A stretch of DNA of 64,000 bases, from positions 124,001 to 188,000 of the IMG/VR virus record IMGVR_UViG_3300042317_001568; one strand, written 5' to 3'. This document shows positions 22,488 to 61,416 of this stretch, in pieces (within the stretch, counting starts at the first letter, position 1; each line of letters opens with the position of its first letter). Made by a program: the position numbers and the translations under genes. The notes beneath the pieces were generated by a model that worked only from the letters and a program-made list of their open reading frames with translations, was not told where the DNA came from and searched no databases.

Positions 22488-22558
22488 TGCCCGATGGTGT
22501 AACGGTAGCACAAGAGATTTTGGCTCTCTTAGTCTAGGTTCGAATCCTAGTCGGGCAT
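22488..22558 (+). tRNA. tRNA-Gln (anticodon TTG), CCA not encoded
   Basis: acceptor TGCCCGA/TCGGGCA, anticodon stem AGAGA/TCTCT with loop TT-TTG-GC, T-arm CTAGG-TTCGAAT-CCTAG. Confidence 0.93.
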
Positions 22559-27259: not shown

Positions 27260-27841
27260 GTGTTTAGTGCCGCACACATGTCAAAAGCCGAGTTGGATTT
27301 TATTCGTTTGTACGTGCAGATCACGCACAAACGCTTTGCGGCATTGCAGGCCGTGTTGAGCTTGGCGCATCCAGACAATCTGGCGCTTTTGGACATGGTG
27401 CACGCTACAGAATTGGTAGCGCACATGGAGCGGCTACAAAACGATTTTGACGGGCAGATACAGCAACTCCAGTTAAAACACAATATTCCGTCTAAACGTT
27501 TGCCGCCTGCCCCGCCAACAAATGAGCAACTGGCCGACATTGTTGTCATGTCATTTTTCAAAGTTGTCGGCGTAATGAACGCGACAAACGGTTTGATGGC
27601 AAAGACAAAACAAAACGGGTGGTTTAGCGGTAAACCCAAAGAGTGGAATGATCTTTTCGACAAGCTGGCGACCGACTTACCCGAAAACCAAATGGATTCG
27701 GCGCTGTCGCCTTATCTAAAATCTGTCGCCAAGTTTTTTCCAAAATATTATCCCCCCGGGAACTGGTCAAAGTTGTTTCCGCCTCCGCAGCAAGAATTTT
27801 ACGAAGACGACGAATACGACGAAGAGTGGGACAACGAATAG
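27260..27841 (+). CDS. hypothetical protein
   Basis: 193-aa ORF with acidic tail. Confidence 0.6.
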   Translation: MFSAAHMSKAELDFIRLYVQITHKRFAALQAVLSLAHPDNLALLDMVHATELVAHMERLQNDFDGQIQQLQLKHNIPSKRLPPAPPTNEQLADIVVMSFFKVVGVMNATNGLMAKTKQNGWFSGKPKEWNDLFDKLATDLPENQMDSALSPYLKSVAKFFPKYYPPGNWSKLFPPPQQEFYEDDEYDEEWDNE

Positions 27842-29031
27842 GAGGGCCTATGCGGCCGTTGTTTGTTTTTTGTGCTGATTTGCATTTGGAAGATGGCGCT
27901 TGGACTTCTCGGATAAACATCTACGGCGACGCGTATTACAGTTTTAAGCAGATCGTAGACCACTGCATTGAGCACAAACTGCCGCTCATACTTGGCGGCG
28001 ACGTGCTGGAAAAGAAAAGCAATGCGGCGCGTCCAATTGCAAAACTGTGCGCCGAGCTGACCCGCATGCAGGACGCCAAACTCCCGGTGTACTACATTCA
28101 GGGTAATCACGAATATGATCGCTATGCGCCGTGGCTAAGCGTGCACCCGTGGCCGACGCACATGCATAACCTCACAGTGGTGTTCGACAACGTCAGCGTG
28201 CACGGCATCGATTGGTTACCAAAGGGAGAAATTCAAAAAGCGCTCAAAGATGTTCCGGCGACTACAGCCGTACTTGTCACGCATCAGGTGTGGCAAGATT
28301 TTATGGGCACCGTTGGGCGAACCGAATGCGATTTGTCGGAGGTGCACTACGCACACACAGTCCTCGCCGGTGACTTTCACGTTACAAAAGTAGCTGAAGG
28401 TACAAACGCGCAAGGAAAACCGATTCGCATGTTGTCTCCGGGTTCAACTGCTATGCAAGACATCGGCGAAGAACCCGAGAAGTTTTTCTTCGTTATTTGT
28501 GTTGACGAAGCGGGCAAAATTGTTTTCGCCCCGCATCGGCTGCAGACACGCAAATTTTTGAGTTATGTTGTTAAAACAGCGGAAGAGCTGGACGAACTGT
28601 GCGCCGGCAAACTGGCAAACGCTGTTGACCGGGTACTACAGGCGGCCCGGCTTTACGTTCCGCCAGAACTAGCAAAACCACTGGTTCGGGTGAAATTCAA
28701 CAAAAACCTTCCGGACGCTTATCTTCGAATCACGACGGCCGGCGCTGACATAGCGCATTTGTTTTGCGACGCCATTGCGGATCGTGACGATGAGAACAAA
28801 GACCGCCCCGCCCGCCCGCGAGATGAAACAAAAAACGACTTACTGCACGCAATCGCCGAGCTGCTTGGCGACGACACAGATGAATATCGCTTCGCGCAAG
28901 AAATACTTGCGGCTACAAATCCAAAGCGGCTCGTTGAGTCGCACCTACACGAATATGTGAAAGGGGCAGGCAATGCAGCTATTACGGCTGGAAGTTCAGA
29001 ACTGGGTGCACCACCGGAAACGGGTTTGTGA
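27826..29031 (+). CDS. sbcD: SbcD/Mre11-like metallophosphoesterase nuclease (probable start ATG 27850)
   Basis: ADLHL, GGD, QGNHE, THQ, GDFH, PGS motifs; adjacent to an SMC ATPase. Confidence 0.88.
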   Translation: MGQRIGGPMRPLFVFCADLHLEDGAWTSRINIYGDAYYSFKQIVDHCIEHKLPLILGGDVLEKKSNAARPIAKLCAELTRMQDAKLPVYYIQGNHEYDRYAPWLSVHPWPTHMHNLTVVFDNVSVHGIDWLPKGEIQKALKDVPATTAVLVTHQVWQDFMGTVGRTECDLSEVHYAHTVLAGDFHVTKVAEGTNAQGKPIRMLSPGSTAMQDIGEEPEKFFFVICVDEAGKIVFAPHRLQTRKFLSYVVKTAEELDELCAGKLANAVDRVLQAARLYVPPELAKPLVRVKFNKNLPDAYLRITTAGADIAHLFCDAIADRDDENKDRPARPRDETKNDLLHAIAELLGDDTDEYRFAQEILAATNPKRLVESHLHEYVKGAGNAAITAGSSELGAPPETGL

Positions 29032-31126
29032 GTTTACCCGCGGCCTTGTCGCCATCCTTGGCGAAAATGGTTCCGGCAAAAGCAGCTTGTTCGGCGCGGT
29101 CAGCTGGCTGCTTACTGGAGAAAACCCCAACTACGGCACTAAAGCCGAAAACATCTCTCAATACGCCGAAAACGACGAGCCGGCTTTTGCGCGACTTGAG
29201 TTTGAGCACAACGGCCATATCGCCGTAGTAACTCGCTGGCTTCGGCCCGAAAAAGAAACAGCCACGATGCTCGTCGACGACGTCGAGGTGGCCAGAGGCG
29301 ACAAAAGCGTCACCGCGGCTATTGAGCAGTTGCTTGGAATTGACGCCAAGTTTATTTCGCGGTTTATCATTGTTGGTCAGCTAGACATTTTTTCGTTTAT
29401 TGACCAACGGCAGAGCGAAGTCGACACTTTTTTTCAGCACCTCTTCGGCACAGCAAAAGCTCAAAAATGCGCCGCTGCCGTAGGCGACGTTCTTCTGACA
29501 GCAAAGCCACCCGAGATATTGCGCACGTCGGCGGAGCTGCAGTTGGTAAGAGACGCGTTGGCTACAAAAATAAAAGACGCTCAGGACCGCGTCGACGCTA
29601 TTCCGACAATTGACGCATTTTTGAAAATGCAGCAGGTAGATCAGGCTATTATCGAGCAATGGCGTTTACGTGAAAAACTTGGCGCAGAGCTTTCAGCACT
29701 TGAGCAGCGGGAAAAAGAGTACGCAAAAGAGCTGCAAATAGATGACGACCAGTTGACTCAGTACGCTGCTGATCTCGCCGCGCTTACCGAGTCCGCTGAC
29801 ACTCAAGACGCAGACTACACATCGGCGAAGGTTGCTTTAGCGCATTGGGGCAACTACAAGACTATTGCTAGCCAACGCCGACAGATTGAAACACAGCGCG
29901 CGGGAATCGCTACTGCTCGAAACGAGAATATACGCCCGGAACCAGTGACGCAGTCGGTGATTGACATGGCTGCGCAAAAGTATGCGCATTTGCATCAAGA
30001 GATCACGCGGCTGCGAAATTTTGTTAGCGCTTTTTCAAAGGCCGGCACAGCCGAATGTCCGACGTGTCATACGCCGACCGCGAACTTACAGGCGCAACTC
30101 GATGAGTCGAAAAAGTTGTTGCCGATTCTGCAAGCACAGGCCGTAGACGCGCAAGAAGCCTTGACAGAGCTGCGAAAAGCCGCAGACGGTTATGCAAAGT
30201 GGGAAAAGACAGATCACGAATTATCGGTACGGGAACAGGCGCTTCAAACATCACTAGCGCAACTTACAGCCGTCTCCCCCCCGACAGATGACGAAACGAT
30301 TCTGCAGCAAACTGTAATAGATTACGAGGAGTTGCAGGCGGCAAAAATCGGGCTTAATGAGCTGCTTCAAAAGCTTCGTGAGCACCGCGCCCAGCTTGCC
30401 GGAGTCGCTACCACAATCGCGGAACGGAAAAGCGAAATAGATCAATCTGTCGCGGTTATTTCTACGACTCAGGCTGACGCACATTTGGCTTCTTTACGGT
30501 TGGAAAAACTCAAAGAGCGGTGTGCTTTGCGGCAGTCACTAGAGCGCGAATTTGAAGAACTTCGTTTTTCTGATCGACAATTAGCCGAGCAGCAGGCAAA
30601 TAGTCAAAAACTGGAGGAGGAGGCAGCCCGGCTTAAAAACTGGACAGAGCAAGCGACGCGCGTTCGGGAGGCTTTCAAGAGTGCCCCGCGGCTTGTGGCT
30701 ACAAGAAATCTGCAGCGGCTGGAGACAGCCATTAACGAGCTGCTGCAAATTTTTAGCGTGAACTTTTTAGTCCGCGTCGCCACCGACGGTACCCCCACGT
30801 TTGTGGCCGAATTTTATGACGGGCGAAAACAAGTTGCGCAGCGGTTGTCCGTCGGGCAGAAAACAGTTTTGGCGCTTGCGTTTCGCGTAGCGTGTAATGC
30901 AATGTTTGCAGAAGAAATTGGTTTGCTTGCGCTCGACGAGCCTACCGCTGCTTTGGATTCTGTGCGTATTCAAGCGCTCGCTCCGGTTCTGGAAAAGCTA
31001 CGAGAACTATCGACGGCAAAAGGGTTACAATGTCTATTGGTGACGCACGCGTCTTCTTTGTCGCATTTGTTTGAGTCGACGATAGAACTCGAAGCACCGG
31101 AAACCCGCCATGTCAAAAAATTATGA
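28973..31126 (+). CDS. sbcC: SbcC/Rad50-like SMC ATPase
   Basis: GENGSGKS Walker A, coiled coils, CPTC zinc hook, LSVGQ signature, LDEPT Walker B, VTH. Confidence 0.92.
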   Translation: MQLLRLEVQNWVHHRKRVCEFTRGLVAILGENGSGKSSLFGAVSWLLTGENPNYGTKAENISQYAENDEPAFARLEFEHNGHIAVVTRWLRPEKETATMLVDDVEVARGDKSVTAAIEQLLGIDAKFISRFIIVGQLDIFSFIDQRQSEVDTFFQHLFGTAKAQKCAAAVGDVLLTAKPPEILRTSAELQLVRDALATKIKDAQDRVDAIPTIDAFLKMQQVDQAIIEQWRLREKLGAELSALEQREKEYAKELQIDDDQLTQYAADLAALTESADTQDADYTSAKVALAHWGNYKTIASQRRQIETQRAGIATARNENIRPEPVTQSVIDMAAQKYAHLHQEITRLRNFVSAFSKAGTAECPTCHTPTANLQAQLDESKKLLPILQAQAVDAQEALTELRKAADGYAKWEKTDHELSVREQALQTSLAQLTAVSPPTDDETILQQTVIDYEELQAAKIGLNELLQKLREHRAQLAGVATTIAERKSEIDQSVAVISTTQADAHLASLRLEKLKERCALRQSLEREFEELRFSDRQLAEQQANSQKLEEEAARLKNWTEQATRVREAFKSAPRLVATRNLQRLETAINELLQIFSVNFLVRVATDGTPTFVAEFYDGRKQVAQRLSVGQKTVLALAFRVACNAMFAEEIGLLALDEPTAALDSVRIQALAPVLEKLRELSTAKGLQCLLVTHASSLSHLFESTIELEAPETRHVKKL

Positions 31127-32054
31127 CGAGACTGTAATGCGGTTGCACACAGACCAAAACGGTATTGTGTGGTTTGCACGCGGCCTAGACGCGCCGACGT
31201 CTTCCGAAAAAAATACAGACACGTTTATGCTGACGCCGGTTTGTTCTGGCAAAAGCGCGGTATTTCGGTTAATTGGAGCTGCGCAAAACGCTGAACTAAT
31301 TTGCGGGCTTTTTTTACGGTTGCGTCAAAAAGAAGTCTTATCTGTTGAGTTGGGCGGACCGAATATTTTTGACGACAATTTGCGACAACTTGACGCGCAG
31401 CAGGTTGTTATGCGCATGAATGGTGTTCGTTTACCGGCATCCCGTGGCGGCTGGCACTCAGCAACCTACGCCGACTACAACATATACGGCTTGCTGGCGC
31501 GTTTAAACCGAAACGGTTTTATGCCGGATACGCCGGCTAAGATTCATTTTGGTTCGCACCCAATTGCAAAAATTCTTCAGTTTATTCCAACACTGTCAGA
31601 GTCAGACGCGGCGGTCTTTGCTGCTACCGTCATCGACCCGCGTTGGTTTTCTGATCGGCGCACAACTGATTGCACTAAAAACGTGTTTAACTTTTTGGGG
31701 CTTACGCCGGCGTCGCAGCGCCGCGTGAGCGATCCGACTGCAATTTTAACGCGTGTTCGTGACGTACGTTGCGCTAGAGTTTTGGCCGCGTGGAAAAGCA
31801 AAGAAATTTCTCCGGACAGCGTAGACCTGAAAAACCCGGCAAATTTTTTGTACCGTATTTGGCACGCTGCCGGCGGTGGGCCAAAGGGGGACTTGCGAGC
31901 TTCGCAGGCTTTTGTACAGTATGCGGTGTCGAACTGGCTGTCAGCGCTGGAGCAGCGCGCCGGAGTCAGGGACGGGCTATTTGCGCCTAACCTGTATTTC
32001 AAAACACCAGCCGAGCAAAAAGCTTACACGCAATACGCCGCGGCCGTTTCGTGA
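31110..32054 (+). CDS. divergent IS110-C-terminal/Nop-domain-like protein
   Basis: HPIAKILQFIPTL...AAVFAATVIDPRWF...VFNFLGLTP resembles the IS110 pattern L..IPGIG...AA....D..RF.....GL.P; closing helix RASQAFVQY..NW. Confidence 0.5.
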   Translation: MSKNYDETVMRLHTDQNGIVWFARGLDAPTSSEKNTDTFMLTPVCSGKSAVFRLIGAAQNAELICGLFLRLRQKEVLSVELGGPNIFDDNLRQLDAQQVVMRMNGVRLPASRGGWHSATYADYNIYGLLARLNRNGFMPDTPAKIHFGSHPIAKILQFIPTLSESDAAVFAATVIDPRWFSDRRTTDCTKNVFNFLGLTPASQRRVSDPTAILTRVRDVRCARVLAAWKSKEISPDSVDLKNPANFLYRIWHAAGGGPKGDLRASQAFVQYAVSNWLSALEQRAGVRDGLFAPNLYFKTPAEQKAYTQYAAAVS

Positions 32055-32057
32055 CCT

Positions 32058-32552
32058 ATGCAGGAAGTAGCAATCACTCTGCGGTTTAACCGTGTCTGTC
32101 TAGGCGCTGCCAGACGACGACGCAACGGGCAAACTATATTTTGCTTTGACCGTGATCCGGACGGCAGAGTGATGTTTATGCCCGCGGCGTGGCTGTCGTG
32201 TATGCGGTACGCTGCCAAGCTCTACAACCGATTCCATACAGACGTAAAAAACATCGATTGGTGTCCGCTTGTAATGGGTACGCCAAAACCAGACTGGCGG
32301 CGAACAATCATTTCAAACGCCAACAAAGAAGACACCCGGGCGCATTTTGCCGTGCATGAAGCCTTCAAGCCCGGCGACAAAATCACGTTGAGCGCTGTAT
32401 TGCCGCAAGAAATTGGCGTGGAAGATTTTACCTACATGTTGACAATTGTCGGCAAATACCGCGGCTTCTCGCCGTTTAACAACAATCAAGAAAAATATGG
32501 CACATTCGAAGTCATCTCAGTCGACCCAATCGCCGGACCCGGATCGGAATAG
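32058..32552 (+). CDS. RAMP/Cas7-like RRM-fold protein
   Basis: VAITLRFNRVCLG first strand, FDRDPDGR, HEAFKPG..I, terminal G-loop L..VGKYRGFSP...KYGTFEV. Confidence 0.55.
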   Translation: MQEVAITLRFNRVCLGAARRRRNGQTIFCFDRDPDGRVMFMPAAWLSCMRYAAKLYNRFHTDVKNIDWCPLVMGTPKPDWRRTIISNANKEDTRAHFAVHEAFKPGDKITLSAVLPQEIGVEDFTYMLTIVGKYRGFSPFNNNQEKYGTFEVISVDPIAGPGSE

Positions 32553-34089
32553 GTTTGCGGGTCTGCGTGTCGTTATCCATAAAACGGGTAACGTGTTGCG
32601 GCTGATGGGCGAGAACAATACGCCCCTGCCGCCTGAACTAATTAAAGCTGTTACGCGCGGCCTGCAGTATTCGCACGTCGAGCAGCTTCACGGAAAGTCG
32701 CACCGTAACCCAATTACGGGGCAGCGGCTGTTTTTCCAGACACGGGAATACAAACTATACCGCGTCGAGAACGGCCAGATTACTTTGCTTTTCGGCTACA
32801 CTGCCCGAGCGCTTAAACGCCTCCGGCGGCTCGGTTGCGAAATTGCGTTTTTTGACCTAAGCCCGGCACGTGCGCGACCAAACTGTTATGTCCCGCAATG
32901 GGAGGGTCTTGCCGGCCGCATCGAGTTCCGCGCCCGGCAGGACGAGTGTTTAAATACGATTGCCCGCGTACCTTGTGGCATCATCAAAGCAGTTACGGGC
33001 TTCGGCAAGACGACACTGATCGGAGCTGCCGCGCTGCTGTTTCCTGAGGCGCGTATTGATGTCGTCACAAAATCTGTCGACGTCGCTGAGCGTATTGTGC
33101 GCAGTCTGCGGCGGTTCGTGCCAAAGGTCGGACTCATTGGTGACGGCTCCCGCCGCCGTGAGCGCGTCACAGTAATCACCGCCGGCAGTTTGGCGCACGC
33201 CGACGGCGACGCGGATTTTTTGTTTGCAGACGAAGTGCATCAGTTGGCCACAATCAACTTCTCGACAACGATAGCGGATCGGTACCGCAACTCACGCAAC
33301 TTCGGTTTGAGCGCCACGCCGTATGCTCGGATGGACAACGCGCACGAAGTTTTGGAGCCGTTGTTCGGCCCGATGATTTTTGAGTTGACGTATCAGCAAG
33401 CGGTCGAGCTCGGGCTCGTCGTGCCTGTTCGCGTCAAATGGCTGCCTATCAGGCTCAGTCACAATCCTGCAGAACGGTTTCAGAATCGTATAGCGAGAAA
33501 ACGGTACGGCATCTGGACAAACCATGAGCGGAACCGTATGATCGCCGAAGCCGTTCGCGAGTATCCAGAAGAGTCTCAAATTCTGATACTCGTTGAGACC
33601 ATTGAGCACGCTGTTTATTTGGGGGCGCAATTACCGGAGTTTACGCTGGTGTATTCCAGCATGGATAACTATGACTGCTCTAAGTACAGAAAAATGGGTT
33701 TGCTGCCAAAAGACTACAGGCCCATCTCCGACATTCAAAAGCACAATTTCCGCGACCAGTTTGAACGTGGTGAATTACGGCGCGTAATAGCCACGGATGT
33801 GTGGTCTACGGGCGTTGACTTTGAGCAGTTGAATGTACTTGTGCGTGCCGATGATCGTGACAGCGACATTGTGGACGTTCAAGGTCCCGGTCGTGTCAGC
33901 CGTATTTACACGGCTCCTGACGGCACATCAAAAGAGGTCGGCGAAGTAATAGACTGCATGGACGTATTCGATCCCACTTTTTACAAGAAAAGCGCTGGTC
34001 GTCGTGATAGCTACAAACTACTTGGATGGGAGCAGAATTGGAATGATGCTCAAAGAAACTGGCGCAATATCCCCAACCATGAGCCGTGA
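32446..34089 (+). CDS. superfamily 2 DNA helicase (UvsW/ResIII-like); start uncertain
   Basis: Q motif RARQ, TGFGKT, DEVH, SAT, STGVD, QGPGRVSR. Confidence 0.9.
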   Translation: MSANTAASRRLTTIKKNMAHSKSSQSTQSPDPDRNRFAGLRVVIHKTGNVLRLMGENNTPLPPELIKAVTRGLQYSHVEQLHGKSHRNPITGQRLFFQTREYKLYRVENGQITLLFGYTARALKRLRRLGCEIAFFDLSPARARPNCYVPQWEGLAGRIEFRARQDECLNTIARVPCGIIKAVTGFGKTTLIGAAALLFPEARIDVVTKSVDVAERIVRSLRRFVPKVGLIGDGSRRRERVTVITAGSLAHADGDADFLFADEVHQLATINFSTTIADRYRNSRNFGLSATPYARMDNAHEVLEPLFGPMIFELTYQQAVELGLVVPVRVKWLPIRLSHNPAERFQNRIARKRYGIWTNHERNRMIAEAVREYPEESQILILVETIEHAVYLGAQLPEFTLVYSSMDNYDCSKYRKMGLLPKDYRPISDIQKHNFRDQFERGELRRVIATDVWSTGVDFEQLNVLVRADDRDSDIVDVQGPGRVSRIYTAPDGTSKEVGEVIDCMDVFDPTFYKKSAGRRDSYKLLGWEQNWNDAQRNWRNIPNHEP

Positions 34090-34804
34090 TGCTGAAATTC
34101 TAAAACCAGACTGGCACACCCGGCTTACTGACAAACAACTGATGGCGTACATTCGCTATCAGTTTATTCGTTTAAAAGAGCACGTTATTGATCTTGATTC
34201 CCCGGCACACACGCACCGGCGCCCGAACTGGGACGGCGGCGAAAATAGCGCGGGTGTCACCTACAAGGCTTTGTGGCCAAAAGCCATGAACGCCATTAAG
34301 GAACGAGAAGCGCATCCCGGCGTTTGGGTGACGGCGCGGTTCTCGCCAATTGCGCTATCGTTTGATTTGTCGAACCGCATGTCAGCCCCGCCGATTAAAC
34401 CGTCGTCGCTAGCCGACCACAATGCCGCGACAATTTACGCTGAATACTGCAAGCGGTTTACCGGGTCATTTACGTTTAATTTGAACATTGCGTTGAAGGT
34501 TGTGGCGTCGCGTTTGCGTGAGCTAGCGGCGCACCCAATGCCGGAAAACGCCCGGGTATTTTATGTTCTTTGTGACGAGGCGCATCTTTCAACGCCGGCA
34601 TTTTTCCGGCACGGCATGGCCTCCGCCGCCGAGTGCGATAAAGCGGCGCTCAAGTACCTGTGGCGCGCCGCAGTCGACTACGAGGCGCAGCAGCCGCTTT
34701 ACGACGCCGCCTGCGCCGCGCAATCTGTTTCAGATTTTATTACTCCCGAATTGCAGCAGTATGTGATTAATATCCGCAAACATTGGATGACTTACAATGA
34801 CTAA
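34004..34804 (+). CDS. hypothetical protein in the replication module (probable start near 34079)
   Basis: lies between the two helicases and overlaps both. Confidence 0.65.
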   Translation: MIATNYLDGSRIGMMLKETGAISPTMSRDAEILKPDWHTRLTDKQLMAYIRYQFIRLKEHVIDLDSPAHTHRRPNWDGGENSAGVTYKALWPKAMNAIKEREAHPGVWVTARFSPIALSFDLSNRMSAPPIKPSSLADHNAATIYAEYCKRFTGSFTFNLNIALKVVASRLRELAAHPMPENARVFYVLCDEAHLSTPAFFRHGMASAAECDKAALKYLWRAAVDYEAQQPLYDAACAAQSVSDFITPELQQYVINIRKHWMTYND

Positions 34805-36488
34805 GAATCAGTTAGAAGATGGCCCACTAAAGGCCCGTGACATCGACGTCGAGTACCCAATTACCGTTACTGACGTGCGGTTGTTGGTGAAAACGTTGCT
34901 GCGGTATCAGCAGATGCTGCAAAGCGCTATCTCTGCCGGATTGAATTTCAATCAGTTTAATGGCCCGGACGAAGCGCCTTACGGTTACGTTATGCACGCC
35001 GCCGGCGCGCTTGTTAAGGAACATAACGCCGTAACAGAGGAAATGCTGAAAGCCGAACTTCAGGCTTGGTATTCTGGCGGGGCTATGGCGATAGCGCCGC
35101 AGCAGTTTGAAGAGTTGCTTGGCACTGAAGGGAATCCCGGATTTCTGAGCGAGGCTTTTGCCGCACCCGAGACAGACAACAAGCGCGTTACCGCGGAGAA
35201 AGATTATGCGCAAAAGCTGCTGTACAAGTTTCTAAAAGCGCGCATGCTGACAGCAGACTTGTCGGAAATGCTTCAGGCGTCGTCGGCTGACACGTCGCCG
35301 CAACGGTTTGAAGAGCTGCTCGGTAAGTCGTATCGCAAAGCGCAGTCAATCCGATTCATCGGCACGGAACTTGACGATGAAAATGATTTCATGCCAGAGT
35401 TCGGCTCAGAAACGAATTACGCGCCCGTAGTCGCCGAGCCAACCGGTATACCGTGGATTGACCAGTACATCGGCGGATTTTGCGCCGGAGACGTAATCGG
35501 TCTTCTTGGCCCTACTGGCGGCGGCAAGAGCAACATGATGATCTCGGCTGCGGTAAGAATGGCGCAATATTATGCGGCAAACAACCTGAACAAGTTGTCT
35601 GTCTACGTGTGCTATGAAGACGGCAATTACCGCATGAAACCGTTGTTCTGGTCCGCCGCGACGCGCATTAGCCGCGAGACCTTTGCAAACGCTGATTTCA
35701 ACTGGGCAAATATGTCTACAAGCGAGATGCCCAACGACGCTGACCGCCGTCTCCCCGAAAATCAAAATGGTGAGTTTATTCTCGGCGAGCGGGAGCGATA
35801 TATTGCCGCGCAGTCTTGGATGAAGAAGCACTTCAAGTTTTTGGACTTTTCTTACAACGTTGCTACTGGCGGCCGCGGCCTTGGCGGGCTGCAGGAAATC
35901 GTATCAGTGGTTGAGCAGATTTGTGAGAAGCGTGGAATGTCGTTGGGTTTTATCGCCATTGATTATGCGGGCATACTTATTGAGCGTTACCTTGCAGCGA
36001 CGGGGCGTTTAAAATCTACAGGCCCTGACGGCGTATATCTTCCGCTAAAAACGTTTGGTGACGAAGTGCGGTATAGTCTGTCTGCTCCGTACGGGGCTGT
36101 AGCTATGGTCGCGCATCAGATTGCTGGCGCCGCCGCAAACGCAAAGCCCTTTTATCGGTATCTTACGCACTGGGACGTACAGCACTGCAAGTCGTTCGCT
36201 GAGAATATGCAGGCTTGCATTTGCATAAATTCTGCGGACCCTGACACGCAAGCGCGGCTTATTAATTACTCAAAAATTCGATACGGCGCGCCCGGGATGC
36301 AGCACGGCATTATCAAGATCAAGAGCGAGTACTGCAGTATTGACCTTGTGTCTGACTTTTATCAGGTCGATGAGTTTTCGAAGAAGATCGTTCCTAAAAA
36401 TGAGCTTTCTTCAGCCGCCGGTCGACCAGCACGAACCCGGCCGTCTTCTGGAATGGTTCCCGGAGATAACTTTAGCAACATGTTGTAG
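34797..36488 (+). CDS. DnaB-like replicative helicase
   Basis: PTGIPWID, GPTGGGKS, IAIDYAG, AHQ, KIRYG. Confidence 0.82.
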   Translation: MTKNQLEDGPLKARDIDVEYPITVTDVRLLVKTLLRYQQMLQSAISAGLNFNQFNGPDEAPYGYVMHAAGALVKEHNAVTEEMLKAELQAWYSGGAMAIAPQQFEELLGTEGNPGFLSEAFAAPETDNKRVTAEKDYAQKLLYKFLKARMLTADLSEMLQASSADTSPQRFEELLGKSYRKAQSIRFIGTELDDENDFMPEFGSETNYAPVVAEPTGIPWIDQYIGGFCAGDVIGLLGPTGGGKSNMMISAAVRMAQYYAANNLNKLSVYVCYEDGNYRMKPLFWSAATRISRETFANADFNWANMSTSEMPNDADRRLPENQNGEFILGERERYIAAQSWMKKHFKFLDFSYNVATGGRGLGGLQEIVSVVEQICEKRGMSLGFIAIDYAGILIERYLAATGRLKSTGPDGVYLPLKTFGDEVRYSLSAPYGAVAMVAHQIAGAAANAKPFYRYLTHWDVQHCKSFAENMQACICINSADPDTQARLINYSKIRYGAPGMQHGIIKIKSEYCSIDLVSDFYQVDEFSKKIVPKNELSSAAGRPARTRPSSGMVPGDNFSNML

Positions 36489-37573
36489 TGAGAGGAATGG
36501 GCGCAACAGTGGACGCGGGAATAAAACCCCTGAACCCAACACTTTACGCGCTGCTGGAACACAAATTCAGCGGGAGCGTAAAGATCGCAAATCCCGGCGT
36601 GGCGGCAGCCATCGAGCGTTATCGTGATCCAGTGCACCCCGGCAGGTACGTAACCCGTAGTTCACACTGGGGCGAGTACTACTGCGTATGCTGCCCGTTT
36701 TGCAACGACGTTGGACACAAGCTCTGGATCAATCATCGCTACGGTGCAGACGTCGACCCCGAAACGGGACGACGCTCGGACACGTTTTTGGCCGTGTGCT
36801 ATAAAAACAATTGTATCCGTACGCGGTATCAGCAGTTTGAAGATTTAGTTTTTGGTCCCGGCAAAAAACTACCAGTGCGTATGGGTATCGCCACCGGCAT
36901 CAAACCCGAAAACGCTGAATCTATTTCTCCGCCGGGCGAGATTGTTTCCTTGGTTGATCTTCCGGACTATCATCCGGCAAACGAGTATCTACGGTCCCGA
37001 AATTTTGATCCCGCTGTTCTCGCCGAAAAATTCGGCGTCGGCGTTTGCGTAAACCCCGTGCCGGCTTACGGCATCATGCGCGGCCGAATCTACATTCCTG
37101 TGTATTCCAGCGGGCAGCTTGTTGGTTGGCAGGGACGGATCGTGACACCCCCCGACGGCAAACCGAAGTATTACACGCAAGGCAGCAAAAGCCGCGCGCT
37201 TTACAACTATGCGCAAGCGGCTCGTCAGCCGTACGTCGTTGTTGTCGAAGGCGTGCCGAGCGTGTGGCGCATTGGCGACCCTGCCGTCGCCATTTTTGGA
37301 AAAACGTTGTCGCAATGGCAGCAAAACACGATCGGCACGGCGTGGACTGGAAAACCTGTTTTTGTCGTGATAGATTTCGGCGAAGACGAGGGGCGTGCGC
37401 TTGAGCAGATTGCCATGCAGCTGTACCGGTATCCCATCCAGTTGGTTCCAGTGCAGATGCCAGACGCCCGCGACCCGGCTGATTATTCTTTGCCGGATTT
37501 TTACGAGTTGCTCCACGAGGCGGCAGCAGACATAGGCGTAGATTCATCAGTATTAAACACGAGAAACCAATGA
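36488..37573 (+). CDS. DNA primase (zinc finger plus TOPRIM)
   Basis: CPFC.D..H, YLRSR, GRIYIP, GWQGR, KYY, VVVEG, DPAD. Confidence 0.88.
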   Translation: MRGMGATVDAGIKPLNPTLYALLEHKFSGSVKIANPGVAAAIERYRDPVHPGRYVTRSSHWGEYYCVCCPFCNDVGHKLWINHRYGADVDPETGRRSDTFLAVCYKNNCIRTRYQQFEDLVFGPGKKLPVRMGIATGIKPENAESISPPGEIVSLVDLPDYHPANEYLRSRNFDPAVLAEKFGVGVCVNPVPAYGIMRGRIYIPVYSSGQLVGWQGRIVTPPDGKPKYYTQGSKSRALYNYAQAARQPYVVVVEGVPSVWRIGDPAVAIFGKTLSQWQQNTIGTAWTGKPVFVVIDFGEDEGRALEQIAMQLYRYPIQLVPVQMPDARDPADYSLPDFYELLHEAAADIGVDSSVLNTRNQ

Positions 37574-40500
37574 GTGTAGTGTCTTTAAATCAGCGTCATA
37601 CACGCTCTCTTTATGACCCTAAAAGCGCTAAGCTAACAGCAGCGCTTTTTCCGTTTTTGCCGCTCGACGCTCCGGGCATGCCGTCCGCAGGCCCGAACTT
37701 TATCGCGCATGCCAATATCTTGGGCGACACGATCGATCCGGCAAAAACGAAAAAACAAATCCCGATCGGCGAGAAGCTGACAAACTTGTACAGAGACGCG
37801 CTGTACAACCCGCAGTTCTTTCTGCCTGTCGCTCACAAGAATGAGTTGACGGCGGTGCCGTTTCTTCCGGGACACATTCTCGGTCAAGTCGCGGACGAAA
37901 AGTTTAAATCGCTTCACGCGACTGATGACGAGTTTGGCCCTCGCCCCGCTCGCGTCATGATCGTAGGAAAGTCCCCCGGGCAGACAGAGATTCAATACCG
38001 CAACTCTTTTGGCGGTTCTGGCATGCGGCCTATGCAGCACGCTATGCAGGAGTGCGGCTTTTTGCCGGACGAGTATTTGTCGTGGTACGTAACCTTCGCC
38101 TGCAAATTTATGTCGCCGGACGCAGAGCTGACGGCTCTCCCGGCCGCGTGGCTGAAGGACTGCGCGCTGCTGCTAGAGCAAGAAATACGGCTTGTACAGC
38201 CAGACTATATTCTCTGCCTTGGCGCGGAGGCTACAAAGGCCGTGCTGCAGACAACCGGGAGCGTCACGAATCTTCTTGGCCGCGCTATAACGCGTAAGTC
38301 AAAAGATGCGGAAGGAAACGACCGCGAGATTCTTGTTGTCCCTGCCGTCAACCCGGGTTTTGTAGCGCGTAAGCCTGACGCTTACGAAGACTTTGTCGGC
38401 CAGATTCAGCGGTTTTACGACTTGGTTCACAACAAGCAGTCTGTTGAAGAAACAGTCGACCACGCCGAGATTTACACGGAAGAGACTTTACGTGAAATGG
38501 TCGATGAGATGATTGCCGACACGACGCTGAACGCGAACATCATCGCCATCGACTGCGAGTGGCACGGCGAGTTCCCCACGGAAGATGGCGCTTACTTGCG
38601 CACCATTCAGGTCTCTAACAAGGACAAGTGGGCGCGCACGATTGTCTTGCGGCATCAAGGCGGTGGAATTGCTTTTCAGCCAAATCTCGACGTAATTCGC
38701 GAACAGTTGAATCGGCTACTGAAGAGCACGCCTGATCGGCATGTCCGAGTTGGCGGGCATTTCTTTCGTGCTGACTTGCCGTGGCTTGTCCACTTCGGCG
38801 TCGATGTACGCGAGGAGTACGGTCCGGTTGATAACTCAGACGATAGAACTCGCGGGGGTTGGGACACGAGTCTGATGTATCACGCTGTAAACGAGACGGC
38901 GCGGTATGGGTTAGACGCGTGCTCCATGCGGTTTACTTCTGCGCCTATTTACTGGGAAGAATTGGACAACTGGAACAAGAAGCGAAAAAAGAATGGCGAC
39001 GCAGACGGCGGTTACGGTAATTGCCCGGGCCACATTTTGCATCCGTACGCCTCGTACGACGCCGACGTCACGCGACGGATTATGTTGCGTTTTTACGGCA
39101 CCAACGGCCGAGACGGCTTGTTAGCCAGCGACGCAAACGGCGTTGACTGCTGGTTACCGTACTGGACCGCGCATATCGCGTCGCTGGCGTTTCTGGAAAT
39201 GGAAATGACCGGTCTCGTAATTGACCGCGACCGCGCTGACGAGCTGACAACCGTGTTTATGAATACGCAAGACCAGCTTTTGGACGAAATTAGGGCGGAA
39301 CTGAACTGGCCTGAATTCAATCCAAAATCGCAGCCGCAACTATCTGTCGCGTTGTTCGGCGCCGACTTTGGCGCGCGGTATGTCAACCCACCCGAGCCGC
39401 CGGCAGACGCTTCGTTATTGAGCCTGACGCCAGTCAAGACAACCGGCAAACGCCCGACCTTGTGGGCGGAACTAGGCATGCGCGGCCTTGACGCAGCTAC
39501 TGCGGTGCCCAGCACCGATAAAGAAAGTCTGGGTATTCTTGGGCATCAAAACGCCACAGCTGCCAAGATTCGCGATTACAAGTTTGTGAGTCAGGTCCTG
39601 CAGTCTGTTTTACGTAAACCAGCAAAAGACGACACCGGAGAATACGAAGCCGATGAAAACGGAAATTTCGTCTATGAGAAGGGGCTGGTGGGCTGCGTTC
39701 ATTCCGACGGCCGTGTTCGCACACACTTTTTTCAGACGAAAGAAACCGGCCGCGCGTCAAGCTCTCGACCGCCTTTGCAAAACCTCAGCTCCCGCCGCGA
39801 GGACGACTATCGACGTATCCTCGGCGCATCTTATCACCACCCAGTCCGGTCAGTCCTGCGGGTGCCAGAAGGGTACGTCGGGCTTGAAACGGACCTCACT
39901 GGTGCGGAACTGGCGGTCCTCGCGTGGTTGTCGCAAGATAAAAACATGATCGAACATGTTCGGCGTAATCTTCTCCCAGAGAGTCACACCGACCATTACG
40001 ACATCCACTCGCGACAGGCGTGCAAGGCGTTTAATCTCCACAACATCGAACCTACAAAAACTGGCCTCGTAAAGGCCGGGAAAAAGGGTTTGCGTGTTGC
40101 CGCTAAAAACGTGAATTTCGGTATCCCATATGGCCGCGGGGCAGAAGCTATCGCGCGGCAATGCAAAGAAGAGGGTGTCGAGGTTACGCCAGCCGAGTGT
40201 CAGGCGATGATCGACGCGTACTTTGACTCGTATCCCGGCACAGCTGATTTTTTAGCGGAGTGCCGCGCACGGTCTCAAAACCCCGGTTGGCTCGTTGGCC
40301 CATACGGCCGCTTGCGGCGCTTTTCATCTGCCGAGTTCAATCGTTCTTCTAACAGCAAGGGTACAAAAGCATACGCCGTTGTTGGAGAACAGGAACGGCA
40401 AGCGCAGAACTTCCCGATTCAAGGCGGCGTGGCTGATGCGGTGTCAATGGCATTGGCGAACTTTTACGAGTATCGCACAAACCACTCTGACATTGATTAC

Positions 40501-40764
40501 AAGATCGCGCTCCAGATTCACGACGCGATTGTTTTGTTGGTTCCCATTGAACACTCTGAACGCGTGTATAAGGAGGTTATTCCTAAATGCATGATTGATG
40601 ATGTGCCGTTTTGGCCTCGCCGATTAGATGGCAGTTCCATCCTTGTTCCCGAGCCGTATCGGTTCGGCTGCTCCCGAGACGTCTTTGTGCACTGGGGCGA
40701 GAACATAACCCCCGAGCAAATCAGGGCTTACGGCATGGACTGGCTTTTTGATTGCAAGGACTAG
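37570..40764 (+). CDS. polA: family A DNA polymerase with N-terminal uracil-DNA-glycosylase-like domain and 3'-5' exonuclease
   Basis: UDG-like VMIVGKSPG / EIRLVQPDYILCLG; exonuclease IDCE, YASYD; TGRASS.PPLQN, DLTGAEL, KNVNFGIPYG, QIHD. Confidence 0.93.
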   Translation: MSVVSLNQRHTRSLYDPKSAKLTAALFPFLPLDAPGMPSAGPNFIAHANILGDTIDPAKTKKQIPIGEKLTNLYRDALYNPQFFLPVAHKNELTAVPFLPGHILGQVADEKFKSLHATDDEFGPRPARVMIVGKSPGQTEIQYRNSFGGSGMRPMQHAMQECGFLPDEYLSWYVTFACKFMSPDAELTALPAAWLKDCALLLEQEIRLVQPDYILCLGAEATKAVLQTTGSVTNLLGRAITRKSKDAEGNDREILVVPAVNPGFVARKPDAYEDFVGQIQRFYDLVHNKQSVEETVDHAEIYTEETLREMVDEMIADTTLNANIIAIDCEWHGEFPTEDGAYLRTIQVSNKDKWARTIVLRHQGGGIAFQPNLDVIREQLNRLLKSTPDRHVRVGGHFFRADLPWLVHFGVDVREEYGPVDNSDDRTRGGWDTSLMYHAVNETARYGLDACSMRFTSAPIYWEELDNWNKKRKKNGDADGGYGNCPGHILHPYASYDADVTRRIMLRFYGTNGRDGLLASDANGVDCWLPYWTAHIASLAFLEMEMTGLVIDRDRADELTTVFMNTQDQLLDEIRAELNWPEFNPKSQPQLSVALFGADFGARYVNPPEPPADASLLSLTPVKTTGKRPTLWAELGMRGLDAATAVPSTDKESLGILGHQNATAAKIRDYKFVSQVLQSVLRKPAKDDTGEYEADENGNFVYEKGLVGCVHSDGRVRTHFFQTKETGRASSSRPPLQNLSSRREDDYRRILGASYHHPVRSVLRVPEGYVGLETDLTGAELAVLAWLSQDKNMIEHVRRNLLPESHTDHYDIHSRQACKAFNLHNIEPTKTGLVKAGKKGLRVAAKNVNFGIPYGRGAEAIARQCKEEGVEVTPAECQAMIDAYFDSYPGTADFLAECRARSQNPGWLVGPYGRLRRFSSAEFNRSSNSKGTKAYAVVGEQERQAQNFPIQGGVADAVSMALANFYEYRTNHSDIDYKIALQIHDAIVLLVPIEHSERVYKEVIPKCMIDDVPFWPRRLDGSSILVPEPYRFGCSRDVFVHWGENITPEQIRAYGMDWLFDCKD

Positions 40765-40865: not shown

Positions 40866-42242
40866 ATGCCTCGTTATCCCGGTCAGAATCTTGCTTCCGT
40901 TAACCCTGAATACCGAAAAGAACACAAGATTGATGACGGCTCAGGTAAGACAAGCCGCTACACTTTCGGTAAAAACGTAGTCATCGCCGCCGGTGACAAA
41001 ATTCTTTCTGGCGGTTTCTGCATGCGCCTGCTCCCACTTGTGGATCAGGCCGGCTCTGCGCGGGCAAACAAGCCCGAATTTATCTCGTTCCGCGAAGGTC
41101 GCGATCAGGCGGCCATCGGCGACTGGTGCCGGATTATGACGGTCGCGTACTGGGTTGGTAACCCGGGCGTGTGCTTCATTATTCATGACGGCAACCCGGA
41201 ATTGGACATCAAGCAGAGTCCGTATTTTCTGCTGCGTGACGCCGCCCGCGCTAACACAGAAACTCCGGGCATTGGCCGGCTGTTTGCTGAGTTGACGCAA
41301 AATCGCGTGATGAACTCGCATATCGGTTCGCTCTCGCAACCCGAGAAGATGCTGTTCGTTTCCGCGACGGCCGTGTATGTAGACGAGCGCGGGCAGGTAA
41401 CTCTGGGCGCTTTCAGCGAAGACCCAAAGCGCAATGCGCGGGTCATCGGTCTGAAGTACAGCGCTACTCAGAGTCTGTATTCTGTGCTCAACGCCCGCGA
41501 CCCGCAGACGGGTGAGTTTTACGTAAACGATATGTTGTCGTTTGGTCCGTCGCAACTTCTGTCGATTGTGCCTGAATCGTTTCAGGCAGGTCCGCAAAAG
41601 CAGATCGGCGTCGGCGAACACGGCCCGGATGTGTTTCACTGCCCGGCGTATGCCCGCAACAACGACCCGAACGCCAAGTTTGTGATCGGTCGTCCGGGAA
41701 AGCCGAGCTCGTATACGCACTACTGCATCGTGCACGACACGTTCCGCGGTCAGCCGATTTCGCTCGAAGCGTACGAAGATCGCATTACCAGCGAGAATCG
41801 TACGATGGACGACATGCTGTACGTGCCGAGCTACGAAGAGCAGGCCGAGCTGCTGTCGCGAGCGTTCCCGCAGGAAGTGCTTGAATTTGCGTGGCAGGAT
41901 TATCCTGAGTATCGCAAGCATCTCCGCGGACGGACGACGACTGTTGAGACATCGCCGCAGCGCACTCCGACTCCGGCAGCTGATTCTAGCTGGATGGATC
42001 GCGCTGCTCCGACCGCAGTTGCCAAGGCTGCTCCGAAGCCAGCGGCTAATTACGATGATGTCCCGTTCGACGGCGAGATTTCCGAAGAGGATACCGCCAG
42101 CGTCGTGGACATGTTCTCCGAAGCGCCGCTCCCAGCCGGCGCGTCCGTTCCGCCTCCTCCGCCGCCCCGCGCTACTCCGGCCCGCTCTACGCCGGCTGAA
42201 ATCATGAGTCGCGTGCGTAAGTCGTCGCGTAAGGACGGCTGA
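40866..42242 (+). CDS. putative single-stranded DNA-binding or recombination protein
   Basis: position between polA and recA; RLLP motif; low-complexity tail with YDDVPF. Confidence 0.45.
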   Translation: MPRYPGQNLASVNPEYRKEHKIDDGSGKTSRYTFGKNVVIAAGDKILSGGFCMRLLPLVDQAGSARANKPEFISFREGRDQAAIGDWCRIMTVAYWVGNPGVCFIIHDGNPELDIKQSPYFLLRDAARANTETPGIGRLFAELTQNRVMNSHIGSLSQPEKMLFVSATAVYVDERGQVTLGAFSEDPKRNARVIGLKYSATQSLYSVLNARDPQTGEFYVNDMLSFGPSQLLSIVPESFQAGPQKQIGVGEHGPDVFHCPAYARNNDPNAKFVIGRPGKPSSYTHYCIVHDTFRGQPISLEAYEDRITSENRTMDDMLYVPSYEEQAELLSRAFPQEVLEFAWQDYPEYRKHLRGRTTTVETSPQRTPTPAADSSWMDRAAPTAVAKAAPKPAANYDDVPFDGEISEEDTASVVDMFSEAPLPAGASVPPPPPPRATPARSTPAEIMSRVRKSSRKDG

Positions 42243-42363: not shown

Positions 42364-43740
42364 ATGGCCCGCAAGAAAAAAGTAGATGCTCGTGACGTCG
42401 GTCTGCCTCACAGCTACGACGGCGAGCATCCAGTAATCACAGAAATCCTGAAGGCCACCGCGGAGGATCAGGACCCGCTTATTGGGTTACCGCTCCCGAC
42501 GTTGGCCGCGCGGTACTTGTTGCAATCAAACATCTTCCCGCTGTCTCGGTTTACGCAACTCCGAGGCGAATTCAGCGCCGGCAAGTCTGCGCTGTTAACC
42601 GAGATCATGCGGTGGTTTCATGTTTATGGCGGCGGCGGAATCCTTATCGACACTGAGAACAAGGGTTCCCCGACAATGCTGGCCGGCATGTTCGGCCACA
42701 ATCAGCAGTACATGGCCCGCACGAAAGTCACGACCGCGGCCAGTGTCGAAGAGTGGCAGAGCAAGTACATGGGTTTCTGCAAAGCTGTGCATGCGCAAAT
42801 CGATGCCGCTGGAGCGCCAGAACGCGTAATCCCTATCTGCATTGGTGTTGACTCTATTTCTGCCGTCGAGGTCGACCGCCGTGTAGAGAAGGTTGCCGAG
42901 GAGGGACATGCTGCCGCCGGTCACCCGTATCTGGCCCGAAACCTCTCTGACTTTATGCGGACCGCTTTAGTGCCGACATTGCGGCACTATCCAATCGCGT
43001 TTGTGGCGACAAATCATCTCAAGGAGGAAATTAACTCTATGGGATTCGGCCCGCCAAAGAAGTATGCTCCCGGCGGCGCTAGCCTCGACTATTACCCGAC
43101 CCTGATTATCGACATGTCGCGCGTCAGTCGAAACAATATTCAAGTCGGCCGCGCAGAAGGGCAGGCGGTCCGATTGATAGCGACCAAGAATAACCTTGGT
43201 GCTCCCGGTCGCCGATTAGTTGTAAATCTTATGTGGTACAACGACATCGTAACCGGCAAAGACGCTAACGGAAACGAAACGTATCGCAATCAGCAGTATC
43301 ACTATTGGGACTGGCACACGGCCACGACGCGGTTACTCATCGAGTTGCAGGATGCCACTAAAAAGCTTCCGCCCGGCATGGACCCGAAACTTCCCGGGCT
43401 GATCAAGCAGGTCTGCGATATCGAGTATAAGCACGGCACGAAGAATGCCGATGTGCCGTTGGTGTTCTCTTCGGCTATGGGCATCACGAAGCAGGAAGCG
43501 GTGTCTGAAGTCGAGTTTTCAATGGCGCTTGAAGAAAACAAAAAGGTGCTGGGTGTTCTAAATGGTTTACTCGGGGTCAACGAGTACATCATCTGCGACC
43601 CGGCACGAAAGTATCGCGAACAGATTATGGAACAGCTGCGTGAAAAGCAGATGACGGACGTTCCTGAACTTATGGCCGCTTCTAGCATGGCCGCAAGCAT
43701 GTTACCCGAAGACTTTGATCCCCTAGGACAGGTGGAGTAA
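42364..43740 (+). CDS. recA: RecA/UvsX-like recombinase
   Basis: GEFSAGKS, IDTE, VDSISA, TNHLK, PGG.SL.YY, KNNLGAP. Confidence 0.85.
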   Translation: MARKKKVDARDVGLPHSYDGEHPVITEILKATAEDQDPLIGLPLPTLAARYLLQSNIFPLSRFTQLRGEFSAGKSALLTEIMRWFHVYGGGGILIDTENKGSPTMLAGMFGHNQQYMARTKVTTAASVEEWQSKYMGFCKAVHAQIDAAGAPERVIPICIGVDSISAVEVDRRVEKVAEEGHAAAGHPYLARNLSDFMRTALVPTLRHYPIAFVATNHLKEEINSMGFGPPKKYAPGGASLDYYPTLIIDMSRVSRNNIQVGRAEGQAVRLIATKNNLGAPGRRLVVNLMWYNDIVTGKDANGNETYRNQQYHYWDWHTATTRLLIELQDATKKLPPGMDPKLPGLIKQVCDIEYKHGTKNADVPLVFSSAMGITKQEAVSEVEFSMALEENKKVLGVLNGLLGVNEYIICDPARKYREQIMEQLREKQMTDVPELMAASSMAASMLPEDFDPLGQVE

Positions 43741-59710: not shown

Positions 59711-61399
<1,689 letters not shown>

Positions 61400-61416
61400 T
61401 GGGGTGTTGTTGAGCC

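Follow-up and report, generated by a model that had tools for sequence, protein, structure and literature searches.

What would a RAMP-like protein and a Nop-like protein be doing side by side in the replication operon of a phage? RAMPs hold the RNA at the core of class 1 CRISPR and VIPR (Viral Interference Programmable Repeat) systems, and Nop-domain proteins do so in TIGR-Tas and IS110. The question is raised by two adjacent genes in the 64,000-nt stretch analysed here (positions 124001–188000 of IMG/VR record IMGVR_UViG_3300042317_001568), which we call the window; coordinates refer to the window unless marked as genome coordinates. The record is that of an uncultured freshwater phage, 205,010 bp in length, with a CheckV completeness estimate of 100%. 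The two genes, ORF-A (314 amino acids (aa), 31110–32054) and ORF-B (164 aa, 32058–32552), both on the plus strand with ATG starts, lie exactly where the original prediction, made from the DNA letters, had placed them.

The arrangement, which appears to be new, is an array-less RAMP–helicase pair embedded in replication genes and joined in some family members by a Tas-like protein. The reading that we favour, with a probability of about 0.5, is that a domesticated, array-less RAMP (ORF-B) works together with its neighbouring helicase in replication or recombination, and that the Tas-like ORF-A is a lineage-specific accessory. A domesticated RNA-binding module serving replication or recombination had been among the functions originally suggested, and it is also the best explanation here.

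Predicted folds of ORF-B and ORF-A

Each protein has more than 240 homologues in metagenomes at E ≤ 0.001, with 43 invariant columns in an alignment of 72 ORF-B sequences and 41 in an alignment of 69 ORF-A sequences. Neither ORF-B nor ORF-A has a sequence match in Pfam (E ≤ 0.1 for ORF-A), PHROG, PADLOC, NCBIfam or PDB; a Pfam scan of 106 diverse ORF-B relatives returned scattered chance matches only, and a second profile search with ORF-A gave only close relatives among the matches listed. Megablast and tblastn searches with ORF-A, ORF-B and two distant ORF-B relatives found no match among 50,697 phage records; none of the cultured phages in this set carries either family. The motifs quoted in the original prediction are all present, namely VCLG, FDRDPDGR, HEAFKPG and GKYRGFSPFNNNQEKYGTFEV in ORF-B, and HPIAKILQFIPTLSESDAAVFAATVIDPRWF...FNFLGLTP and RASQAFVQYAVSNW in ORF-A. 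Only the spacing given between conserved letters needed correction, by 1–4 residues at three places, which is trivial.

The model of ORF-B (pLDDT 86.2, pTM 0.80) has the order β1, hairpin, α1, β2, long hairpin, β3, α2, Gly loop, β4. The long hairpin (residues 77–103, 32286–32366), with predicted strands at residues 77–86 and 94–103 and a tip of lower pLDDT (71–76), is likely equivalent to the thumb of RAMPs. Residues 132–151 (32451–32510) comprise the Gly-rich loop and the last strand (GKYRGFSPFNNNQEKYGTFE), a RAMP hallmark, and G132, G136, S138, P139, G148 and F150 are invariant or nearly so across 106 diverse family members.

Searches with this model agree with the RAMP fold and terminal Gly loop that had been assigned by eye. 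Foldseek against the PDB gave 58 matches at E ≤ 0.001, and all those listed are CRISPR effector complexes, with Csm and Cmr subunits, type VII Cas7 and gRAMP at the top; VIA-align ranked Cmr4 (Z 11.6), Csm3 (Z 11.4) and gRAMP (Z 10) highly. The top three matches in AFDB (2.3 million clusters) were A0A1F4YLN4 (E 1.4e-8), A0A2D6XG06 and X1U2U4, spanning E 1.4e-8 to 5.9e-6 and TM 0.58–0.67, with A0A0F9A1L0 at rank 12 and A0A661D0E2 at rank 17. These accessions lead to VIPR, which pairs a Vipr protein with a vrRNA and is described in two preprints (bioRxiv 10.64898/2026.04.26.720920 and 10.64898/2026.04.26.720927; PDB 36pp). Vipr proteins were defined there from five AFDB clusters; all five founding clusters are within the top 17 of ORF-B, and three of them are its top three.

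Profile comparison provides a further link. The profile of the 106 diverse ORF-B relatives matched the solved Vipr chain of SUSP1 (36pp_D) with E 0.034, and matched a six-phage Vipr alignment in hhalign with a probability of 89% and E 2e-6, over the C-terminal 42 columns only, which span strand 3, helix 2, the G-loop and strand 4. SUSP1 Vipr reads GGY through H17, R138, D177, W178 and R179. The last three align with S138, P139 and F140 of ORF-B, so that these three GGY-reading residues are lost there; H17 and R138 lie outside the alignable part.

Because the Foldseek, VIA-align and AFDB matches and the Vipr profile link coincide, ORF-B is predicted to be a Vipr-like minimal RAMP, composed of a single RRM with a thumb-like hairpin and a Gly-rich loop. 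Judged from its model, it is nearest to the virus-borne Vipr proteins, with Cas7 second.

The AlphaFold2 model of ORF-A (pLDDT 90.6, pTM 0.88) has two parts. Residues 9–82 follow the order β1-β2-β3-α-β4-α-β5 of an RNase H-type fold, and the remainder is helical. From this strand–helix order, a RuvC/YqgF-like RNase H-fold domain is predicted for residues 1–112 (31110–31445); an all-helical Nop/Tnp-type domain is assigned to residues 123–311 (31476–32042) on the basis of a match to the Nop domain of TasH. Foldseek against the PDB found no relatives (best E 0.44), and the kinship emerged only from VIA-align and AFDB, where many IS110-family transposases were retrieved. The top VIA-align match is TIGR-TasR (9mty_B, Z 11.0, 229 residues over model residues 8–311), followed by TasH (Z 8.4–8.5, Nop part only, model residues 120–313), IS621 (Z 8.2–8.3) and ISCro4 (Z 8.0). 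Below this group, matches restricted to RuvC/YqgF had Z ≤ 6.2; the RuvC-like domain alone matched RuvX, YqgF, RuvC, a pox resolvase, TnpB and the Cas12 RuvC domain at Z 5–6.6. The best ESM Atlas match (TM 0.66, 254 residues) is a cluster from CPR bacteria (Minisyncoccota) in which 80% of members carry PF02371, and the clusters matched there carry PF01548 and PF02371; the feature search of ESM Atlas gave no useful lead on ORF-A. The IS110/Nop-like fold seen by eye in the original prediction is thus recovered in the TasR, TasH, IS621 and ISCro4 matches to the predicted model, from which ORF-A is predicted to be a TasR/IS110-type protein with RuvC-like and Nop/Tnp-type domains.

The two domains differ in conservation. 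A distant homologue at locus L012 (23% identity; L numbers denote individual loci) retains the HP, DPxW, LGL[TS]P..VS, LRAxQ and DxLFxP motifs of the helical domain, and S207, which follows LGLTP, is conserved even there. In the same homologue, other residues stand in place of the candidate acidic E62, D122 and D140, and the N-terminal 50 residues cannot be aligned; strand 1 of ORF-A has no Asp. Because the helical motifs are kept and the acidic residues replaced, the Nop-type domain appears to be the functional core of the family, and the RuvC part is probably catalytically inactive.

Several identities that size or secondary structure had suggested were ruled out by the fold searches: a Cas1–Cas2-like pair, a flap endonuclease or T4 RNase H, and a gp59-type loader. 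ORF-A was also compared with vap1 of SUSP1 and is unrelated to it.

Gene order, conservation and the search for guide arrays

The original prediction placed the two genes within a replication module, in agreement with the operon found here: sbcD-sbcC-ORF-A-ORF-B-SF2 helicase-orf266-DnaB-primase-PolA, at least nine co-oriented and tightly packed genes. The overlap or abutment of ORF-A and ORF-B with sbcC and the helicase, also noted there, was measured. sbcC ends at 31126, 17 nt into ORF-A, and a gap of 3 nt separates ORF-A from ORF-B. The start codon of the helicase is uncertain: its frame shares 56 nt with ORF-B if translation begins at the ATG at 32497, and 107 nt if it begins at the TTG at 32446, where the mechanical ORF starts. 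There is no flanking intergenic DNA at ORF-A or ORF-B, and therefore no non-coding stretch to hold transposon ends, whose absence had been remarked. The helicase itself (32497–34089) matches Pfam ResIII and Helicase_C and phrog_16 (2.2e-32), and among solved structures it is closest to archaeal XPBII (E 6.9e-12).

All 42 IMG/VR loci share the gene order from sbcD to primase, within the limits of their contigs. A large number lie on contigs of 198–205 kb, and many homologues of ORF-A and ORF-B are likewise on contigs of about 200 kb. sbcD lies upstream in 40 related loci, a gene encoding 175–266 aa always separates the SF2 helicase from DnaB, and the helicase is directly 3' of ORF-B in all 41 IMG/VR loci that extend that far, as well as in L001–L003, L012, L014, L058 and L059. 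Among distant ORF-B relatives (28–33% identity), it is immediately downstream wherever the contig reaches. The expected joint conservation of ORF-A and ORF-B was found in the 42 IMG/VR loci and fails in L058 and L059, which have ORF-B and the helicase but no ORF-A. L012 has the order sbcC-A-B-helicase and L014 A-B-helicase, whereas L058 and L059 have sbcC (or a 632-aa gene)-B-helicase-~200 aa-DnaB. Since these two loci keep the module without ORF-A, the invariant pair is ORF-B and the helicase, and ORF-A is probably a later addition.

Per-gene identities relative to the window, taken as medians across the 42 IMG/VR loci, are highest for the SF2 helicase (74%) and ORF-B (68%, clade range 62–72%), which makes these two the most constrained genes of the module. 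sbcD (59%), sbcC (54%), primase (53%) and ORF-A (48%) follow, with DnaB and orf266 at 38% each. At the sequence level, ORF-B and the helicase behave as core genes.

Variants of the arrangement were also observed. Two to three extra small genes (147–189, 270 and 119–120 aa) separate ORF-A from ORF-B in L046:4258-5995 and L052:4908-6013. Several relatives have insertions of 1.5–1.9 kb in the helicase gene: the helicase product of L014:1129-3666 contains an intein-like LAGLIDADG_3 domain, and in L023, L026, L029, L042 and L046 the best helicase match lies 1.5–1.9 kb further downstream than usual. Inteins and similar insertions are typical of essential phage genes, and the helicase insertions in these relatives fit that pattern.

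Described vrRNAs consist of 9–16 YNNGG units beside vipr, some of them degenerate (NNNGG, YNNNG, NNNNG), and degenerate repeats were detected only by a language model, according to the VIPR preprints. TIGR arrays have 8–12-nt repeats alternating with 9-nt spacers (Faure et al., Science 2025, PMC12045711). We scanned the genome for exact and tolerant YNNGG, NNNGG, YNNNG and NNNNG runs, for column conservation at periods 4–14, for autocorrelation at periods 18–89 and for CRISPR-like seeds, with Markov shuffles as the background and true Vipr loci as positive controls. Across all 205,010 bp, nothing exceeded the shuffles apart from a poly-G artefact and coding repeats, all with a period divisible by 3. 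Neither the genome nor 53 related ORF-B loci (603 kb) yielded an array of VIPR, TIGR or CRISPR type; the highest count was 5/9 vrRNA units, the level of shuffled sequence. The same script recovered 8–9/9 units directly beside vipr at five of six true Vipr loci. Periods 18–89, which would cover a TIGR array, gave only multiples of 3, in all regions but one within long collagen-like, Gly-rich or acid-rich ORFs, and no CRISPR repeat–spacer array was found in the 205 kb. The genome-wide scan for short-period repeats that had been called for is hereby done. In PADLOC, neither ORF-A nor ORF-B matched a Cas model, and the Cas3 and DinG matches of the helicase were weak and at chance level; together with the whole-genome repeat scans, this upholds the absence of cas genes and of an array, as previously stated.

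Some periodic regions deserve description. A 6/9 GG-period signal at genome 304–353 was rejected, being a Gly/Trp-rich coding repeat at the contig end beside the poly-G run (genome 1–60), which opens the contig and is likely a sequencing or assembly artefact. The single periodic region outside long ORFs (genome 118114–118456) is Asp/Glu-rich and was taken to be coding. Nearly all of the tandem-repeat signal in window and genome arises from collagen-like (Gly-X-Y) repeat genes at window 59753–61399 and 61414–64000 (running past the window end) and at genome 103218–109208 and 199961–202093. The minus-strand ORFs 61860–62462 and 62620–63255 are probably shadows of a plus-strand gene of about 1030 aa. 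Both contig ends (genome 1–60 and 204886–205010) fall within a repeat gene rich in Gly, Trp and Tyr, and the break in the assembly was thus probably inside a repeat of a circularly permuted genome.

Almost all genes in the crude gene map are on the plus strand, including those that surround the pair. The conserved block opens with an sbcD/Mre11-like phosphoesterase (27826–29031; Pfam Metallophos 2.5e-07, phrog_100) and an sbcC/Rad50-like ATPase (28973–31126; Pfam AAA_23 and SMC_N, phrog_77 5.9e-33). Downstream of the helicase are orf266 (34004–34804), which has no family match and a conserved position, a DnaB-like replicative helicase (34797–36488; phrog_19 8.5e-18), a DnaG-type primase (36488–37573; phrog_47 5.8e-37) and a family A DNA polymerase (37570–40764), supported by tblastn matches to phage PolA genes and by PF03167 and PF00476 in its L001 and L002 orthologues. 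The N-terminal domain of this polymerase is UDG-like. Neither a 5'-3' exonuclease domain within it nor a separate gene for a flap endonuclease or RNase H could be recognised. Next come two adjacent ORFs of 458 aa each, the first (40866–42242) without a family match and the second (42364–43740) a UvsX/RecA-like recombinase (phrog_97 1.3e-27, Pfam RecA 2.3e-05). The proximity of this recombinase marks the block as a toolkit for recombination-dependent replication.

SSB, gp32, RuvC and RusA gave no match in the genome, weak negatives drawn from few Pfam models, and the one Endonuclease_7 match was spurious, sub-threshold and on the wrong strand within the primase gene, leaving no credible EndoVII. 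Without Pfam matches to SSB, gp32, RuvC and RusA, several replication and recombination roles appear vacant, among them those of SSB, mediator, loader and resolvase. The ORF at 45816–46676 has a weak, sub-threshold DUF1016_N match (4.2e-05); its product could be a YhcG-type PD-(D/E)XK nuclease and a candidate for the vacant resolvase or nuclease role. A tRNA-Gln (anticodon TTG, 22488–22558) is the sole Rfam/ARAGORN match in the window. The crude codon-usage map shows many gaps of 300–1350 nt between genome 4000 and 18000, which may hold non-coding RNA or else short early genes whose codon usage is atypical. This genome is present in no RNA run; a freshwater metatranscriptome contributed three short contigs, all from close relatives, too little to show transcripts or small RNAs.

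Proposed role of the module and rival explanations

If ORF-B and the helicase cooperate as we propose, the RAMP would have been fixed as the core partner of an XPB-like, DNA-opening helicase. It would polymerise on, or clamp, single-stranded nucleic acid exposed by helicase opening or by SbcCD resection, its substrate being transcript or primer RNA in an R-loop or single-stranded DNA in a D-loop. The opened intermediate, once stabilised, would permit loading of DnaB and primase and hence recombination- or R-loop-dependent replication. ORF-A would have been added as an accessory in the 200-kb clade and some relatives, with its Nop-type domain holding structured or branched nucleic acid and its RuvC part probably reduced to a dead scaffold. 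We infer that the module is a nucleic-acid-handling unit derived from guide systems, or ancestral to them, and not a device for programmable interference.

The VIPR preprint makes the case for a viral origin of RAMPs that predates CRISPR. A bolder proposal, which we regard as improbable, can be framed in two ways: either the RAMP, with or without the Tas-like protein, binds a phage transcript and directs helicase opening at origins or recombination intermediates, amounting to RNA-guided initiation of replication, or the RAMP–helicase pair preserves a replication job that RAMPs held before CRISPR and before VIPR.

A number of points weigh against a guide-free replication role. The mechanism is built from fold, synteny and conservation. 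The inactivity of ORF-A was judged from one distant homologue, and active nucleases and recombinases are among the nearest relatives of ORF-A. That SSB and resolvase genes are absent depends on the few Pfam models searched. The scans would miss a single non-repetitive guide or a degenerate array, and structured RNAs were not searched for in the approximately 37 gaps of at least 120 nt in the crude gene map. Finally, every characterised relative among Vipr, Cas7, Tas and IS110 proteins uses a guide RNA, and a non-canonical hidden guide may be present.

These last points lead to the possibility of a working RNA-guided effector, a VIPR/TIGR-like hybrid in which a RAMP filament and the Nop protein share a non-canonical guide and recruit the helicase to target DNA, as in Cascade–Cas3 or type IV Csf–DinG. 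As guide, such an effector might use one structured RNA, a degenerate array or a fragment processed from an mRNA, and its purpose would be inter-phage conflict or host takeover. The guided nature of all characterised relatives (Vipr, Cas7, TasR, TasH and IS621) is in its favour. Type I and type IV CRISPR effectors likewise combine a RAMP with a helicase, and this pairing speaks for the idea too. Some VIPR types have helicase or nuclease accessory genes, as the VIPR preprint reports, and these, like the degenerate VIPR repeats, would be precedents. However, no period-5, ~18/36-nt or CRISPR-like array rises above shuffles in the 205 kb and the 53 loci, with controls that work; ORF-A and ORF-B have no intergenic space beside them; the GGY-reading residues appear lost from ORF-B; ORF-A is dispensable in distant lineages; and core-gene-like conservation at a fixed position in a replication operon is unlike that of conflict genes. 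We consider a guided effector rather unlikely.

A different division of labour would make ORF-A an active Holliday-junction or branch resolvase of RuvC fold, with a helical DNA-binding domain, acting with SbcCD, UvsX and the branch-migrating SF2 helicase, and ORF-B its single-stranded-DNA-binding accessory. The RuvC/YqgF fold of residues 1–112, which reaches Z 5–6.6 with RuvC, RuvX, pox and chloroplast resolvases, the neighbouring SbcCD and UvsX, and the failure to find Pfam RuvC, RusA or a credible EndoVII elsewhere in the genome are all consistent with this. RuvC-type enzymes carry an Asp on strand 1. ORF-A has none, its candidate acidic residues (E62, D122 and D140) are replaced in L012 along with an unalignable N-terminus of 50 residues, the conserved core is the Nop-type domain instead of the RuvC part, and ORF-A is missing from distant phages in which the other genes of the module remain. 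In addition, only three resolvase families were searched, and the DUF1016-like product is a possible PD-(D/E)XK nuclease. An active resolvase is therefore doubtful in our assessment.

The original prediction also raised an anti-CRISPR-like function, in which ORF-B, as a decoy mimicking Cas7, would poison Cascade, Csm or Cmr assembly or soak up crRNA. Its Cas7 fold and phage origin would suit such a part. Anti-CRISPRs are typically patchy, fast-evolving and located in accessory regions, whereas ORF-B keeps 62–72% identity across the clade, is always beside the helicase and is among the slowest-evolving genes of the operon; it is also nearer to Vipr than to any host Cas7. This core-gene-like conservation fits poorly with a decoy, which we regard as highly improbable.

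A domesticated RAMP acting with the helicase would have consequences beyond this phage. A Vipr-like RAMP is here a slow-evolving, array-less core gene, tied to an XPB-like helicase across a widespread clade of ~200-kb freshwater phages. If the pair is guide-free, it would show what RAMPs are capable of outside guided targeting, perhaps before guided targeting existed; if it uses a hidden guide, it would be a new compact effector with two guide-binding folds and a motor. Either outcome bears on the origin of RNA-guided immunity, and, should the ancestral version be true, the root of that immunity would lie in viral replication machinery.

Comparison with known systems

ORF-B resembles Vipr in being a small (~160–200 aa), phage-encoded, single-RRM RAMP with a G-loop, located outside CRISPR loci. 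A replication setting is not foreign to Vipr either: in Gordonia phage Trine (MH271318.1), the vipr homologue (gene 41) lies between DNA polymerase I and primase/helicase. Just downstream of it, we observed a 9/9 YNNGG vrRNA-like array (L008:2110-2154), located inside the coding sequence of gene 40, annotated as 'hypothetical protein', which may be mis-annotated non-coding DNA. The two families differ in several respects. True vipr loci have a YNNGG array and ORF-B has none beside it; the G-loop is GxGDWRP in Vipr and G[FI]SPF in ORF-B; and the minimal VIPR locus has two genes with long intergenic flanks, whereas ORF-B sits inside an operon of at least nine genes, overlapped by the helicase and fixed beside it. 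A described VIPR type may overlap the ORF-B family.

With the Cas7 RAMPs (Csm3, Cmr4, type VII Cas7, gRAMP/Cas7-11 and type IV Csf2), ORF-B shares the fold over its whole length, with Z 9–11.6, TM 0.58–0.65 and 126–159 residues aligned, and the association of a RAMP with an SF2 helicase is reminiscent of Cascade–Cas3 and type IV Csf–DinG. In contrast, sequence identity is 6–15%, ORF-B is shorter than most Cas7 proteins, whose insertions it lacks, the neighbouring helicase is XPB-like and neither Cas3 nor DinG, and cas genes and a CRISPR array are missing.

TasR is the best solved match of ORF-A (PDB 9mty) and has the same domain order, RuvC then Nop. It is structurally near IS110 and includes clades with an inactive RuvC domain, among them clades from CPR bacteria (PMC12045711), the group to which the best ESM Atlas match of ORF-A belongs. 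ORF-A differs in its low identity (9%), the lack of a match to Nop or Tas sequence models, the absence of a TIGR array beside it or in the genome, and its place between sbcC and a RAMP gene.

The IS110 family (IS621, PDB 8wt6/8wt9; ISCro4, PDB 9t56) shares the RuvC-like plus Tnp/Nop architecture with ORF-A (Z 8.0–8.3 over ~230–240 residues). PF01548 and PF02371 did not match ORF-A, and PF02371 found nothing in six frames of the genome at E ≤ 10. The FIPxL...AA...IDPRWF...LGLTP segment of ORF-A resembles the Transposase_20 helix-hairpin-helix motif, and the conserved S207 is a candidate counterpart of the catalytic serine in the Tnp domain of IS621. Unlike in IS110, the DEDD acidic residues are not conserved in the ORF-A family, and no non-coding flank is present for a bridge RNA or element ends. 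ORF-A occupies one fixed site, between sbcC and ORF-B, in more than 40 genomes, which argues that it is not mobile.

On the helicase side, the kinship with archaeal XPBII recalls the XPBII–Bax1 pair. We know of no XPB or UvsW partner that is a RAMP or a Nop-domain protein, and our literature search found no paper on a Nop-domain protein and a RAMP together or on a RAMP within a replication operon. The setting as a whole is closest to the recombination-dependent replication set of T4, which consists of gp46/47, UvsW, UvsX and gp41/61: the block in the window likewise holds SbcCD, an SF2 helicase, DnaB, primase, PolA and UvsX.

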